This document shows, piece after piece, positions 26,823 to 32,759 of a stretch of 64,000 nucleotides of DNA. Position numbers and translations under genes: made by a program. The stretch's first letter is position 1. Each line of letters begins with the position of its first letter. This stretch comes from Adineta vaga (lineage: Eukaryota > Animalia > Rotifera): contig CP075497.1 of the NCBI GenBank assembly GCA_021613535.1, positions 9,548,001 to 9,612,000 of the forward strand. The letters are read 5' to 3'. Below the pieces are notes generated by a model. The model did not search any database and was not told the origin of the DNA. It was given only the letters and a program-made list of their open reading frames with translations.

Positions 26823-28240
26823 CTATCGTCGATTGATTAAACGTAAATACGACGGATCAAAAATATGTTGATTATTTTTCGGTGATAAATCTCCTGTTGA
26901 AGAACGATTCAATGCAGTACGTAAGACATCTTCATTGATAATTAATATAGATGAGGCATCCAGATTATTATTATTATTATCGCATTGGTTTTGTTGACGA
27001 CGGCGATGACGTAATTCATGGGGTTTAAATGTTATTTCATTTGATGAATTAACTGTATGTGCTAAATGAAGATCAATTAAAGTTTGAATAACATCTTCAA
27101 GACATATGCCAGTATCCAGACTAAAAGAAAAGAATGAATTTAGAGAGCCTTTGTTTTTTTTGCTTTTAGAATGAGCAAATCAAAACCTTAGTTGTGATAC
27201 TGGTACATGTATTTGTAAACGACGATATTCTTCGAGTTTTGATAAGATTGTCGAATGCCAATAACTTTTATAGGTCATTTGGCCAAGAGCTGAGAGAGGT
27301 TTTTCAGGTGAACCTGTTTTCTTTTCTAATTTTGTTAATTCATAACCTAAATAAAATTTATCCTGAACAATCGTTTCATCTCAAAAATCAACTTCTTACT
27401 TAATGCAATTAAAAATCGTCCAAAACCTTGTCGTTGACGATGTGGTAATACCTGTAAAATTCAAACCGCGAACAAAATCAACTACGAAATAAACTTCGTC
27501 TTTCTTTACCATTAAACAAGCTAAATTATACAACTCATCACTGAGTTTTTCCTATAAAAATATGCGAAGAATAATTTTTCGATCAGCATATTTCGATTTA
27601 TTCATTTCTTACTTTAGAAAAATAGCCAATAATATGTTGAATATTTTTTGTTCGTTTATCAGCTTCAACGAGAACATAAAAAAGAAAAGGTTCCACATCG
27701 AAATAAATTGTTTTTCGTTCGAGAAATAATTTCGCCAATAAACAAAGACATTGACAATAGAGCTAAACCAAATAAAAGAATGATTTCAATAAGAATACTA
27801 ATGAAACAATTTACTTGAGATGTTGTTCCATCAACTTCATATACAGACAAACCATCTGGATGTTCATAAATCTTTCGACCAGGCGGATGACGTCGATTAC
27901 ATTCATTCTAGAAAATTGATTTTTCAATTCAATGATTATATCTTCATTTAATTGATTCTTACTGTATGTTGACGATATTTTCGACTATTTAGAAAATAAC
28001 GTAAGCATTCTTCACAAATATACAATTTATCAATTGTTCGATCTTTTTCATTCGAACCATCTTCAGCGTCAATATAAGGAGAATGAAACCAACAATCAAT
28101 ATCCACTTGACCTAATCGAATTGATGATATATGTTTCGTATTATCTGGAATCTAAACAAACGTTCCAAATAAAACTTTAAGAAAATCTTCTATCTTACAT
28201 CTAGTTGATCATCATCACTCATTGAATCATCATCAGCCAT
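26823..28240 (-). CDS. Stand-alone MYST-family histone acetyltransferase
   Basis: Spliced minus-strand translation: MADDDS...DCWFHSPY...[11 protein letters not shown]...HPPGRKIY...VYEVDG...[30 protein letters not shown]...GYFSKEK...[22 protein letters not shown]...SYEL...[11 protein letters not shown]...YW...[12 protein letters not shown]. The C2HC finger, acetyl-CoA motif and catalytic Glu are all present. Confidence 0.92.
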
Positions 28241-28435
28241 AATCTAAAACAGATTCTACATTATCGTTTTTCAATAAATAATAATCTTATTGTAACCAAA
28301 ATCGGTTTACAATAATATTCTCTAAAATAGCACCCAGTAATTTTTATTTAAATAATGAGAAAAATGGAAAACAGAGTTTCTTTTTTTTTTTGCACTTTAT
28401 CATTACAAATATGAGATTGCACGGAATGAGAAGAT

Positions 28436-30339
28436 TCAAAATTCATCTTTGTTTGGTTTCGCATTATGTTGATCGATATGTAATGTTGGAAGTGAATATT
28501 TTAATCGTTTTGCTGAACGATATGCCGAATGTTCTTTAACATATTTAACCATTTTACGTACAATACGAGTAAATTCATGTTTATCAAAGGCATAATTTGT
28601 AAATTTCTTATGTGGCGTTCCTAATGTTGGATGTTTGCCTTCATCTTGAGGATAGGCTTTCTCTTCATTTTCCCAAGTATAATATTTCACACCACGAAGA
28701 CGAGCAAGATCAAGATAACAATCTTTATCTTCACAGTTATGAATTTCAAAGATTGCTGCCCAATCAGGTAAGAAAAGTAAATGAGTTAGACCAGCACCAT
28801 GCATACCTAAAATGAAAATTTTCAAATTAAACAATCATTTATACAGAAAAAAACAAAATTGTTTTCTCAGTTAGTTCTAAGCTCAAAAACACAAATATTA
28901 TCCCTTGGTGATTATTCTAAATACGGTGTTCAATCTTTAGCAAAAGCAATTCGTGCATGTTTATATATATTTACTAGAAAATTCATGTATCTAAAAGATA
29001 AGTATATTAAATCGATTCATTCGAATTAAATAAAATTTACCCATGAAAATATCAGTATTATGAGTAATATTCAATTGTTGAATGAATGGCATATTTATAT
29101 TATAATCAACAACATTGATAATATAATCATTGTTTCCATTAGTTGAAATATTTCTTAAATGATCAACGATTTCGTTAACATTTAAAATTTGTCGAAATTG
29201 TGTCGTTCGATTCAATAATGTTATGCGTATTTGATTGGATTTCAGTGGACCTAATTGTGGTATACGTAGTCGATGAACTAAGTACTGTTGAAATGAACGA
29301 AATAAACTTGTTTGTGTACATCCAGGTATCAATGGCATGTTGTAATAGAAACCTAAATGAGTTTTTTTTTGCAATGAAATAGAATGTGATGAAGATTTGT
29401 TTTGTTTATCTTACCATAAAACATTCGAGCAAGAAATGAGAAGATTACATTTTGAAAACAGACACGTTTTCCTTCGAATTCTTTGATATGTATCAGTCGA
29501 TTTGATGTAAATGCATTCCATGTCGGCGAAAAGAAACTCCAATAATCATTACTACTTGTATCCCATAAAATAATTTGAATATCTTTTGTAAATGTATTAT
29601 TCATATGTTGAGAAACATATAGATTAATAAAATCACAAAAATGATGATACATATTATAACCACTATCAAGTTTAATCAATATTGTTGGTTTTGTTATTGT
29701 TAAATCACAATGGAAAGAATTTGTCTCATTAATTTCTTTGAAAACTTGTAATTCAGAAAACCAACTTTGTAATGGACTTTTATGATCACCATTTTTAATC
29801 AAATCATCATGATTTAATTTACAATAACCACCAATATCACCAAATTTTAATATATCTTCTCGATATCGGTCATGATATTTGGATGTTTCCGTATGTCGAA
29901 AATCGATATAGATATTTTTTGCACGACAAAATTTCAAATGATCAACACATTCAAGTGATGATGATGGTGATGGTGAACATATTTCTCTCAATTCATTACG
30001 TTTTTCTGCTATATAACCGAAATCAGCTGTTCGCCAAAATTCAGAAATTTGCTTTTCTTTTGTTGTTGTCCAACCACGACTGTCATCCGGACATTGAATA
30101 AGTGAAGCATTAGTTTTACAATTCGGTTCATAACCCCAACAAGCAGTGTCGGCTGATGGAAGATTTTGAGCTTGTTTATAATATGGACATTGATCGCCAT
30201 CCAAAAGACATTGCGTATGAATGGAAGGATTATTGGTAAAGAAATAAATTGCATGTTCAAAAGGAATATCAAGATCAGACCAATTATAACTATCACCAGA
30301 AACAAAGGCAAAGAATGTGAAGAAATATATAAATAACAT
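28436..30339 (-). CDS. EOGT: EGF-domain-specific O-GlcNAc transferase (GT61)
   Basis: Three exons. Signal peptide; CWGYE; [10 protein letters not shown]; HKSPLQSW; [13 protein letters not shown]; [17 protein letters not shown]; [11 protein letters not shown]; C-terminal KDEF (KDEL-like ER retention signal). Confidence 0.95.
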
Positions 30340-30423: not shown

Positions 30424-32323
30424 TTATTTCGTTGATGATGGTGTTGAAGAAGTTTTTCGCAAATCACGATCATAAAATAGAAAACTTTGAGGTTGGTTGC
30501 CAGTTTTGAATTCAAGTTTGTCTACATGCCACCTAAAGAAACACAAAAGACAAGAGTCAATCTTTGTAAAAACAAAGTATTTATAATCAAAATAAATCCT
30601 TATTTCTTTTTTTCATATTCGACCTTCATATAAATATACTATTAAAAGATACTAATCGCTTTTTAATAATCATTTGAAAAGTATTATTTTTCAAAAGACT
30701 TACTCATCATCGACTGATTCCCGTGTCGCATAACAATAAATAATTCCAGATCGCTCTGCACCACGAACAGGTATTTCAACCTAAATGAGATTTGTCATTT
30801 TGCTTATAACAAAAAAAAGAAGAAGTTTTTTTTTCTGAATTTCTTTCAACGCTGTTGTTTTTTATTCAACATAGAAAACAAAACAAAAAGAGTAAATCAC
30901 GCATCAGTACGATTCGATGATACTTGTCGTCGATTTTTCAAACGTTCTTTACTCTTTGTTACGGTTGGTTCATATTCAATTTCCAGTTTACGTTTTTTCG
31001 ATGAAGGAAGTGCTTTAATAATTTCTTTTTCAATTTCATCATCATCACCATCACCCATATCTTCCATATCTTCCACATCACTCTCTTCAAAATCTTCCAC
31101 ATATTCGACTTCTTCTCCACTTTCATCTTCCTCTTCCTTTTCTTCTTCACTTTCCGTTTCTTCTTCATCCTCTTCGTCGTCTTCTTCATCCACTAAAATA
31201 AAATTGAAAAACATAATCAACATTTCGTATCAAATCACAAGAGACTATTTACATGAAATTGTATTGACTGGAAATGTATATGTATCACCATATGTTCCTT
31301 TTTTCAATCGTTCCAATAATTCATTTTCAATCGCACGATCAATATTCGCAGCAACAAATGCTTTGTCTTCATGAACTTTTTCGCGTCTTTCAGCTTTCTT
31401 TTTAATTGGTACTAATTCTTGTTTAGCTGTTTTCTTCAACATTAAACGTCGTGTTCGAATAATGTATTGAGTTAATTTTGTTAAACGTTGTTTACATTTA
31501 TGTCGAACAAACCGTGGCCAATAGATTAAATGTTCATTGATTTGTTTCAATGCACGAAGATAATTTTCATGTAATTTAACTTTTTCCCATTGTTTTTTTG
31601 GAAAATGTGAACGTTCAACAACTTTCATATAAAGATATAAAATACCTTTTTCTTCACGAACAGTTGCATATTGAGAATTTGCTAATGGGCATGAACGACG
31701 ATCACATAAACCAGTTAGATTGTATTCATTTGAACAGAAGATTTGTGTTTTACTTTTTTGTTGTTTATAGGAACAAAATTGTCCATTGAGAACTGACCAA
31801 ATGACATCATCGTGTTGCATTGTTTTACCGAGATTTTAGATATTTTATCTAGAATGAATAAATGACTCGGTTCCTTGAACTTTTCATTGAGTCTCGATCA
31901 TAAATTTATGAATATGTAATTTATTTGAATAGTAGAGCGAAGAAAAAGAAGAAATAGTCGAATGAATAAACTTACTTGTGCACCAAGAGGTGAAAGAGTA
32001 TTGAATTTACTTGTTGTATCAACTAGTAGTGGTTCAATAGGTTCGATTAGTTTATCTACTATTGGTTTATAACCACGTGTTAATTCAAGTGCTTCTTGGT
32101 AGAAGGATGTTTGAAGAAATAGATCTACATTTAAAATACATATTGAAGAAAATAAAGATGAAAATAAGTTATATTAACTTCGAGCTTTTTGTCGAGCACG
32201 AATTTGTGCATAATAAACAGCACTTGAACCAGCAAGACCAATAACAGATGCAAATAATACTAATGGATGACCCCAACGAGATCGATTCATTTTTGGTAAT
32301 GAGTTTTTATTATTCGAAGACAT
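30424..32323 (-). CDS. COA1: Cytochrome c oxidase assembly factor 1 (COA1/MITRAC15)-like, 4 exons; intron 2 contains MAK16
   Basis: Exons 32323-32179, 32124-31976, 30780-30704 and 30532-30424 (phases 1,0,2; all GT-AG) give a 159-aa protein. It has a basic N-terminus and one TM segment ([18 protein letters not shown]), then [24 protein letters not shown]...GAQ|[34 protein letters not shown]. This follows the COA1 pattern YxxALxxL...A.l.IPVxG...G.lY....r......W.ld.l as I recall it. Confidence 0.8.
30897..31820 (-). CDS. MAK16: MAK16 60S ribosome biogenesis factor (nested in COA1 intron 2)
   Basis: [19 protein letters not shown]...[27 protein letters not shown]...[10 protein letters not shown]...[13 protein letters not shown]...[16 protein letters not shown], then one short intron, an acidic tail and LEIEYE. 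AATAAA on the minus strand at 30866-30861. Confidence 0.96.
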
Positions 32324-32759
32324 TTCAAATGAATAATTACTAAGTCAGATAGTTTTAGTATAGTATAAATGAGAGATGCTTTTTTTGTCGCAAGTATTTG
32401 ATCAAATGAAGAATACAACGTTAGAGTATAATATTTAGTAAATAATCTTATTGAATAGAGGTATAGTATATGTTAACGAATCAGATCTATGATGAGATAT
32501 TGCTCTGATTACTAGCGACATCTATCATAAAAGTATTTATTAAGAAATTCGTATTTTGATTGAAATTTTAATGAATAAATTGATTCTTTCTATAGATATT
32601 ATTCTACAGTTTATTTTGATTCATACGGATAGAAAGCTAATATCTTTTCCTATTTCATTCATATGATTTCACAGGTAAATCAGATATTTTATTGACAATA
32701 AAGAAAAGAAGTGTATTTCCTTATATGTACATTGATAGATTTCTGTGATTTGAGATTCT

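Follow-up and report, generated by a model that had tools for sequence, protein, structure and literature searches.

On chromosome 6 of Adineta vaga, four genes of the minus strand, COA1, MAK16, EOGT and MYST, lie head to tail within the window analysed here (64,000 nt, contig CP075497.1, positions 9,548,001 to 9,612,000; coordinates below are those of the window). MAK16 is nested on the same strand within COA1 intron 2 (31975-30781). The gene-to-gene gaps are short, with 84 nt between the COA1 stop (30426-30424) and the EOGT ATG at 30339 and 195 nt between the EOGT stop (28438-28436) and the MYST ATG at 28240, as in same-strand operons resolved by spliced-leader (SL) trans-splicing. An acceptor-like AG precedes each start codon: at 32341-32340 for COA1 (16 nt before the ATG at 32323), at 31850-31849 for MAK16 (28 nt before the ATG at 31820), at 30341-30340 for EOGT (0 nt) and at 28245-28244 for MYST (3 nt). 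These features, along with an EOGT AATAAA at 28348-28343 and, about 10 nt from the AG, the single GT of the COA1-EOGT spacer, had been claimed in an earlier note on this DNA, and all are present, every coordinate having been re-checked in the sequence. The window holds 9 copies of the bare motif YYYYAGATG versus 9.7 expected, and the motif was dropped as a genome-wide marker; the acceptors rise above chance through their placement at true starts, their conservation and the RNA joints rather than through the motif itself.

The gene identities proposed earlier were upheld by Pfam matches and orthologues. All profile and homology queries were single exons or naturally spliced RNA contigs (L009, L013-L015), and no joined protein models were used. 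MAK16 matches Ribosomal_L28e (3.3e-38) and Mak16 (2e-16), MYST matches zf-MYST and MOZ_SAS, and EOGT shows 100% identity with an Adineta vaga protein of 535 aa, besides having orthologues annotated under the EOGT name. The profile match of COA1 is weak: a natural RNA contig matched Coa1 (PF08695) with E 6.5e-4 and 19.9 bits versus a cut-off of 22, over the exon 3-4 half only, and single COA1 exons gave no match in the Pfam search. The whole Rotaria paralogue of the COA1 product is likewise marked “Coa1 (weak)”. A second genomic copy of MAK16 or EOGT was looked for in A. vaga and none was found, both being single copy. Rfam profiles run over 26000-33000 gave no credible match, every score being far under the gathering threshold.

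COA1 comprises exon 1 (32179-32323, with the ATG at 32323), exon 2 (31976-32124), exon 3 (30704-30780) and exon 4 with the stop codon (30424-30532). Exons 1 and 2 are connected by an RNA joint 32179/32124. The exon 2 donor (31975) is spliced to the acceptor at 30781 in a joint that skips 1195 nt in runs X1 and X6 (30778/31974, cut +2), while exon 4 is supported by orthologues and the spliced contig L009, the four A. vaga runs having no contig cover there. RNA contigs from two runs (X6 record 18 and X17 record 7) both start at 32398, within an initiator-like conserved block (32390-32410) which contig starts and alignment mark as the putative transcription start site of the unit. Upstream of it lies a conserved promoter-like block (32474-32528, minus strand; alignment A1) in which two short motifs do not vary among five bdelloid taxa; across the four runs, 32450-32640 is free of RNA contigs. 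Such a block is present only 5' of COA1. The AG at 32341-32340 (CTTAG), from which an SL acceptor at 32339 had been predicted for COA1, falls within the transcribed 5' untranslated region (UTR), and the prediction finds no support because contigs of both runs pass through it to 32398. That the COA1 contigs run past the predicted acceptor and start beside the promoter-like block fits a first cistron.

The MAK16 mRNA body (30897-31848, stop at 30897) consists of a 28-nt 5' UTR, exon 1 to 31253, an intron (31252-31193, RNA joint 31192/31253) and exon 2 from 31192. Its acceptor AG terminates a conserved non-coding block (31849-31893), and this junction (J2) is preserved across A. vaga, Rotaria and the environmental loci. 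At the other end, the AATAAA (30866-30861) is kept in all orthologous loci (junction J3) and is followed by a poly(A) site (30826-30866 for signal and site together), where an X6 loose end carries 15 T at 30826; the site falls within an A9 run of the genome (30834-30826), and the COA1 exon 3 acceptor follows some 45-55 nt downstream. A joint 29975>31165, although found in three runs, was rejected as a splice because its ends are non-canonical and one side has just 20 nt, and is taken as a foreign contig touching an acidic low-complexity stretch.

The 84-nt spacer between COA1 and EOGT (30340-30423) is U-rich and ends in TTTTTAG abutting the EOGT ATG. In nine of nine Adineta/Rotaria-type loci the AG sits directly on the EOGT ATG, the spacers being 56-92 nt long. 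The EOGT coding sequence (28436-30339) has exons at 30339-29415, 29352-29041 and 28806-28436, with RNA joints skipping 62 and 234 nt. Its AATAAA is followed by a conserved GGGTGCT (28335-28329), and in alignment the pair (28329-28348) is likely to represent a proximal EOGT poly(A) signal plus downstream element. An EOGT contig (X6 record 15, 28807>28243) continues into 10 A, placing an EOGT 3' end on the MYST acceptor (28243-28245); this end is one contig from one run. The poly(A)-to-acceptor gap, which is about 45-55 nt from MAK16 to COA1 exon 3, is thus 0 nt from EOGT to MYST, the arrangement of Ciona-type operons, seen at this junction only. The conserved AATAAA and GGGTGCT about 90 nt upstream suggest that there is another, perhaps the main, EOGT poly(A) site. 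MYST, a short KAT8-like acetyltransferase, is encoded by eight exons (26823-28240) supported by RNA joints and domain matches. An A-tract loose end at 26670 was not accepted as its poly(A) site, as a genomic A10 run adjoins.

Rotifers have been known to trans-splice an SL since 2005, and in bdelloids roughly half of the mRNAs or more bear it. Loose ends of A. vaga contigs read ACTTACCAAG followed by the genomic AG at 31850 (run X6) and TTACCAAG followed by the AG at 30341 (run X17), and both match the 3' end of the published 23-nt rotifer SL (PMC3795323, Table 1). MAK16 and EOGT are therefore trans-spliced in A. vaga at 31848 and 30339, as had been proposed, with the SL directly on the ATG in the case of EOGT; the contrary outcome of cis-spliced UTRs and an absence of SL reads at these acceptors was not encountered. 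MAK16 mRNAs of a related bdelloid carry the SL in three further runs (L033, L034, L036). For MYST the SL was not seen in A. vaga, and the proposal holds at the orthologous acceptor of two related bdelloids, whose mRNAs (L013, L015) begin with an SL tail; L015 diverges from the genomic-type spacer of L009 and L014 precisely at the acceptor AG. The A. vaga genome contains 42 SL exon copies with at most one mismatch to the published SL (control 0), all identical and each followed by a GTAAAT donor, and a specialised SL2-like leader was not found among them. The same SL tail is carried by MAK16, EOGT and MYST, which is not the pattern of SL2-type operons. Because many bdelloid mRNAs bear the SL, its addition alone is no marker of an operon.

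Gene order, strand and short spacers are retained in Rotaria magnacalcarata and seven environmental bdelloid contigs. The arrangement is partly kept in Didymodactylos, where a spacer some 534 nt long precedes EOGT and MYST does not adjoin, and Brachionus (plicatilis) lacks the cluster, with no synteny and different neighbours for EOGT. The Rotaria MAK16 model (326 aa, 2411-4336) extends over COA1 exons 3-4 and looks fused. COA1 and MYST have also been duplicated as a pair on A. vaga C3, without MAK16 or EOGT. The gap from COA1-B to MYST-B is 99 nt on A. vaga C3, 91 nt in A. ricciae and 327 nt in Rotaria, an adjacency that is hard to square with a MYST promoter inside EOGT.

Several RNA contigs bridge neighbouring genes. 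In A. vaga, X17 record 7 extends from 32398 to 30820, lacking both COA1 intron 1 and the MAK16 intron and retaining COA1 intron 2, and X1 record 3 spans MAK16 into COA1 exon 3. In a relative, L009 joins the MAK16 3' end, COA1 exons 3-4, EOGT and MYST, spliced and with both spacers retained; L014, from a second run, is 99.5% identical to it over the overlap, so that the EOGT-MYST join is represented in two runs. In the four A. vaga runs 30450-30649 is without contig cover, and bridging of the COA1-EOGT junction is thus limited to the relative. An EOGT mRNA whose mature 3' end is the acceptor AG has no bases in common with mature MYST mRNA, so the bridging words need molecules that cross the junction, although their source could be nascent read-through or trace genomic DNA. 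Since these RNAs are assembled contigs and not single molecules, they leave polycistronic transcription unproven. The earlier note had proposed a polycistronic unit resolved by the SL; its SL part stands on the joints, and its polycistronic part has only indirect support, from a polyadenylated EOGT 3' end that abuts the MYST acceptor, from contigs that bridge genes in two species and from conservation on both duplicate copies. On this evidence, COA1-MAK16-EOGT-MYST is probably a bdelloid-conserved, operon-type polycistronic transcription unit. Transcription would begin near 32398, cross COA1 and the nested MAK16, and continue through EOGT and MYST, and we infer that a single polymerase pass supplies all four genes. 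Downstream mRNAs would receive capped 5' ends from the 23-nt SL at AGs 28, 0 and 3 nt before their ATGs, and upstream mRNAs would be polyadenylated 0 to about 90 nt ahead of the next acceptor. As the MAK16 acceptor and poly(A) site lie within a COA1 intron, one precursor would yield either COA1 mRNA (by cis-splicing 31976 to 30780) or MAK16 mRNA, never both.

The same features might be read as those of tightly packed, independently transcribed genes, with promoters for MAK16, EOGT and MYST within the upstream gene or spacer. The SL would then merely trim a short outron, and the bridging contigs would stem from read-through, from nascent RNA or from traces of DNA. The addition of an SL does not single out operons, one SL serving both gene classes in Ciona and Oikopleura, and contigs cannot establish single molecules. 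Conserved sequence where promoters might lie also speaks for independent genes, namely the non-coding block at the MAK16 acceptor and motifs in the EOGT-MYST spacer. Run X1 has contigs for MYST and MAK16 and none for EOGT, so that levels look uncoupled, though coverage holes prove nothing. Against this, the EOGT poly(A) end falls on the MYST acceptor itself, so no untranscribed DNA is left there for a promoter, and the COA1-EOGT spacers of relatives and A. vaga alike are just tens of nucleotides long and contain the COA1 poly(A) signal. In locus L028 a distance of 30 nt separates the conserved GGGTGCT motif from the acceptor, which is too short for a TATA-type promoter of a trans-spliced gene, and MYST-B is conserved and expressed-looking right behind COA1-B where EOGT is missing. 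Independent transcription throughout, including the account of the SL and bridging contigs that goes with it, is judged unlikely.

An intermediate arrangement, in which EOGT and MYST are co-transcribed with COA1 and MAK16 has its own promoter, either in COA1 intron 2 or overlapping COA1 exons 1-2, is very unlikely. The conserved block of about 45 nt just 5' of the MAK16 acceptor, which could be such a promoter, and the conserved 18-nt 5' UTR at that acceptor would suit it, and MAK16 contigs are far deeper in words than COA1 contigs, though depth is a poor measure and was not used for ranking genes. On a shared RNA, moreover, the unpaired COA1 donor upstream should be cis-spliced to the acceptor of MAK16. 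The outron rule of C. elegans favours such cis-splicing for an unpaired donor 127 nt 5' of the acceptor, yet the joint 31976>31848 was not seen in A. vaga RNA contigs. Against a separate promoter, just 127 nt lie between this donor and the acceptor (114-127 nt in Adineta/Rotaria-type relatives), X17 record 7 joins COA1 exons 1-2 to MAK16 unbroken, and a P0249 contig has a 154-aa ORF ending 28 nt ahead of spliced MAK16.

The polycistronic reading would add rotifers to the short list of animals with operons, that is nematodes, tunicates, flatworms and chaetognaths. Rotifer operons were entered as “ND” (not determined) in a 2008 comparative table, and full-text literature searches with operon and polycistronic terms found no description of one; the locus looks like a sea-squirt-style operon in a phylum without described operons. 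It is possible, if doubtful, that Ciona-type operons are a regular mode for bdelloid housekeeping genes, that a cistron can sit within an intron, and that operonic transcription is older than both rotifers and chaetognaths. The last point arises because chaetognaths, which are also gnathiferans, have operons, so that operonic transcription might predate the two phyla. The mapped SL joints, the poly(A) end on an acceptor, the bridging contigs and the cross-family conservation make the question of rotifer operons directly testable, and bear on whether operons with zero spacers originated more than once. Operons have been suggested to speed recovery from growth arrest (cited in PMC12460157), and those of rotifers may relate to recovery from desiccation arrest. 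The arrangement also matters for annotation, as the apparently fused MAK16 model of Rotaria illustrates.

Like this locus, operons of C. elegans combine same-strand genes of housekeeping content with U-rich spacers that separate poly(A) site from acceptor by about 50-100 nt and with a first gene that has a promoter of its own (putative in A. vaga), and in the rare SL1-type operons poly(A) site and acceptor abut; SL2-type operons differ in their specialised leader, which has no counterpart found in A. vaga. The nesting of MAK16 recalls the cholinergic locus, where VAChT occupies the first ChAT intron in the same orientation and alternative processing of a shared primary transcript gives either mRNA. 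VAChT and ChAT, however, are functionally linked and have a common 5' exon, whereas MAK16 and COA1 are unrelated and the MAK16 5' end comes from the SL. Chaetognaths, gnathiferan relatives of rotifers, have operons defined by spacers of <250 bp (Paraspadella gotoi, PMC12460157; Spadella, PMC2481426) and likewise combine widespread SL trans-splicing with no operon-specific leader, although their SL sequence is unrelated to that of rotifers and an independent origin is preferred by the authors. Ciona intestinalis has SL-resolved operons without intercistronic DNA (Satou et al., 2006; PMC1488885). The rotifer locus is unlike these in its phylum, in showing abutting ends in one contig only, in having an AATAAA about 100 nt upstream where most Ciona operon cistrons have none within 40 nt, and in the spacers of tens of nucleotides that its other two junctions (MAK16 with COA1 exon 3, COA1 with EOGT) seem to retain. 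It is like them in using one SL for monocistronic and operon genes, in trans-splicing the downstream cistron, in combining functionally unrelated genes, and in an upstream poly(A) that starts right after the next acceptor AG (here EOGT at 28243/28244 and the MYST AG at 28245-28244).

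The four genes lie head to tail on the minus strand of 9548001-9612000 of the chromosome-scale contig C6, in a genome of 100.8 Mb and six contigs. Each was identified by Pfam and homologues, the Coa1 match being a weak one, with searches run on single exons by reference or on natural spliced RNA contigs. COA1 has exons at 32323-32179, 32124-31976, 30780-30704 and 30532-30424, and MAK16 (exons 31820-31253 and 31192-30897) sits entirely within its intron 2. EOGT follows with exons at 30339-29415, 29352-29041 and 28806-28436, and the eight exons of MYST extend from an ATG at 28240 to a stop at 26823. 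EOGT encodes a protein that is 100% identical to one of 535 aa named from A. vaga, which assigns the DNA to this bdelloid rotifer, and MYST encodes a short KAT8-like MYST acetyltransferase without a Tudor-knot domain. Every distance and motif given for the cluster in the earlier note is correct on the sequence. The motif of pyrimidine run, AG and ATG shows no excess in the window (9 observed vs 9.7 in shuffles); taken by itself the pattern is therefore weak, and what counts is the placement of the motif and the RNA evidence, not the bare motif.

Twenty public runs contain the stretch, and contigs of four of these runs, from four studies, were aligned to 26650-32640. Every cis-intron of the gene models was recovered in A. 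vaga contigs as a CT..AC joint (GT..AG on the sense strand), and the 1195-nt COA1 intron holding MAK16 is spliced out in runs X1 and X6. An alternative 50-nt splice in EOGT intron 2 (joint 28990/29041, minus strand, run X6) occurs alongside the main 234-nt intron. Two contigs among the four runs extend past an acceptor with extra letters, which on the sense strand read ACTTACCAAG and then genomic AG at 31850 (MAK16 acceptor), and TTACCAAG and then AG with the EOGT ATG at 30341 (EOGT acceptor). The rotifer leader has been published as GGCTTATTACAACTTACCAAGAG (PMC3795323, Table 1). Its exon is found in 42 genomic copies, with T replacing the first G and a GTAAAT donor directly after each, and the reversed leader, used as a control, has 0 matches in the genome. 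Because the extra letters at both acceptors agree with the leader, MAK16 and EOGT are SL trans-spliced, precisely at the sites predicted for them (31848 and 30339). The leader is the entire 5' UTR of EOGT, and MAK16 mRNAs with an SL tail occur in three further runs, these from a relative.

Most SL RNA genes come in head-to-head pairs with a distance of about 154 nt, as at L001:1405-1773 (G000:C1, about 2551064-2551432) and in 20 similar pairs. One pair matches Rfam MIR821, a family of miRNA precursors from plants (rice), with E 1.7e-25 and a score of 127.8 bits that falls short of the gathering score (249). Rice ESTs are known to be contaminated with rotifer sequences (PMC2481426), so the MIR821 model may have been built on a rotifer SL gene pair.

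The SL acceptor that the earlier note proposed for COA1 at 32339 is not supported, as COA1 contigs from two runs read straight through it, and both start at 32398. Two short motifs 5' of COA1 (32528-32474) are invariant in five taxa, and a second conserved upstream block encloses 32398. The upstream neighbour on the minus strand is a large ankyrin/armadillo-repeat gene (32669-35857) with an apparent end near 32700 (AATAAA 32693-32688), about 290 nt from the COA1 contig start. Since 32450-32640 is covered by zero RNA contigs of the four A. vaga runs, this gene is probably outside the COA1-MYST unit.

Some RNA contigs cross from one gene into another. In A. vaga, record 7 of run X17 extends from 32398 to 30820 with COA1 intron 1 and the MAK16 intron spliced out and the COA1 exon 2 donor left unspliced, and record 3 of run X1 links MAK16 to COA1 exon 3 through the MAK16 poly(A) site. 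A Logan contig of another bdelloid (L009, EOGT 77% identical) holds, in order, the MAK16 3' end, spliced COA1 exons 3-4, a 66-nt spacer, fully spliced EOGT, a 152-nt spacer and spliced MYST; a contig from a second run (L014) repeats the EOGT-MYST portion at 99.5% identity with a few differences. The JGI contig L015, whose MYST protein is identical to that of L009, diverges from L009 precisely at the MYST acceptor AG and starts with CTTACCAAGAG, and a MYST contig of a closer relative of A. vaga (L013) starts with CCAAGAG. The leader expected on MYST (28243) is thus found at the orthologous acceptors of these related bdelloids; the SL joints in A. vaga are those of MAK16 and EOGT.

The MAK16 3' end is a poly(A) tract at 30826-30834, which lies 27-35 nt past a conserved AATAAA and 45-55 nt from the COA1 exon 3 acceptor. 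A single X6 contig that covers EOGT from exon 3 onward reaches 28243 and then shows ten A, which places its 3' end at the MYST acceptor AG (28245-28244). Since the genomic sequence at 28243 is AG, A, TT, ATG, oligo-dT mispriming is unlikely. The EOGT-MYST spacer also has a conserved AATAAA (28348-28343) with GGGTGCT (28335-28329) after it, and these may mark a second EOGT poly(A) site in a proximal position, at about 28325. The same spacer contains a 9-bp hairpin (28285-28320, minus strand, ATTGTAAAC arm), which is retained, bulged or with a compensating change, in A. vaga, Rotaria (L018) and the orthologous locus L024, and is missing in L009 and L028, whose spacers are shorter; its folding energy is only modestly lower than that of shuffles.

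The complete COA1(MAK16)-EOGT-MYST order is found in Rotaria magnacalcarata, where a convergent P2X receptor gene comes next. It is matched, within the reach of each contig, in all seven environmental bdelloid contigs whose length allows neighbours to be seen. Didymodactylos carnosus keeps COA1(MAK16)-EOGT, but the spacer there measures about 534 nt and MYST does not follow; the order is not kept in Brachionus. The Didymodactylos EOGT (L010:3643-5265) is intronless in the genome and has no AG on its ATG. The COA1-EOGT spacer measures 56-92 nt and the AG abuts the EOGT ATG in all nine Adineta/Rotaria-type loci, where the spacer usually contains AATAAA; the gene order may predate so tight a junction. 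In Rotaria magnacalcarata, the deposited model of MAK16 (L018:2411-4336, 326 aa) overlies COA1 exons 3-4, an apparent fusion of the mis-annotation type caused by operons and nested cistrons.

A duplicate of the region is present in A. vaga (C3, 6926247-6929432), A. ricciae and Rotaria, with COA1-B directly before MYST-B (99, 91 and 327 nt, respectively) and without MAK16 or EOGT. Judged by its layout, the duplicate copy is itself operon-like. The A. vaga spacer carries AATAAA 44 nt before the acceptor, and the A. ricciae copy has UBA1, choline kinase, COA1-B and MYST-B in that order on one strand, separated by 336, 205 and 91 nt.

The best reading, which we consider probable, is a single transcription unit beginning near 32398. 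COA1 mRNA would be made by a cis-splice from 31976 to 30780 that discards MAK16, MAK16 mRNA by SL addition at 31848 and cleavage near 30830, which would destroy that COA1 precursor, and the leader, added also at 30339 and 28243, would release EOGT and MYST. The main rival, a separate promoter for each gene with the SL trimming short outrons, seems rather unlikely. The mature mRNAs of EOGT, when it ends at the acceptor AG, and of MYST have no bases in common, and the words bridging them therefore come from junction-crossing molecules, which must be precursor RNA, read-through RNA or contaminating DNA, alike in contigs. In the duplicate, EOGT is missing and COA1-B and MYST-B are still adjacent; a promoter of MYST located in EOGT would be lost in this arrangement, whereas a downstream cistron fed from upstream would persist. 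A hybrid, in which MAK16 is transcribed from its own intronic promoter, is less probable still. It draws on a non-coding block of about 45 nt abutting the MAK16 acceptor (31893-31849, minus strand), kept in A. vaga, Rotaria and environmental bdelloids together with 18 nt at the start of the MAK16 5' UTR (31821-31848), and on the unpaired donor 127 nt upstream, which shows no cis-splicing to that acceptor. The block could act in splice choice or as an intronic promoter.

SL trans-splicing is already known in rotifers. Their operons are entered as not determined in a 2008 comparative table (PMC2481426), a 2025 chaetognath paper mentions rotifers only in loose terms when it lists lineages that have trans-splicing and operonic transcription, and a full-text literature search on operons and polycistronic transcription found no description of a rotifer operon. 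We class the locus as a probable SL-resolved operon, in which one cistron is nested and one junction is Ciona-like. In operons of Ciona, the tail of the upstream mRNA begins immediately past the downstream acceptor AG, and Satou et al. argued that such an abutting layout demands transcription through the boundary (PMC1488885); the median intercistronic distance in Ciona is 1 bp (SLOPPR paper). The likeness here, seen in one contig, is the EOGT poly(A) end placed on the MYST acceptor AG.
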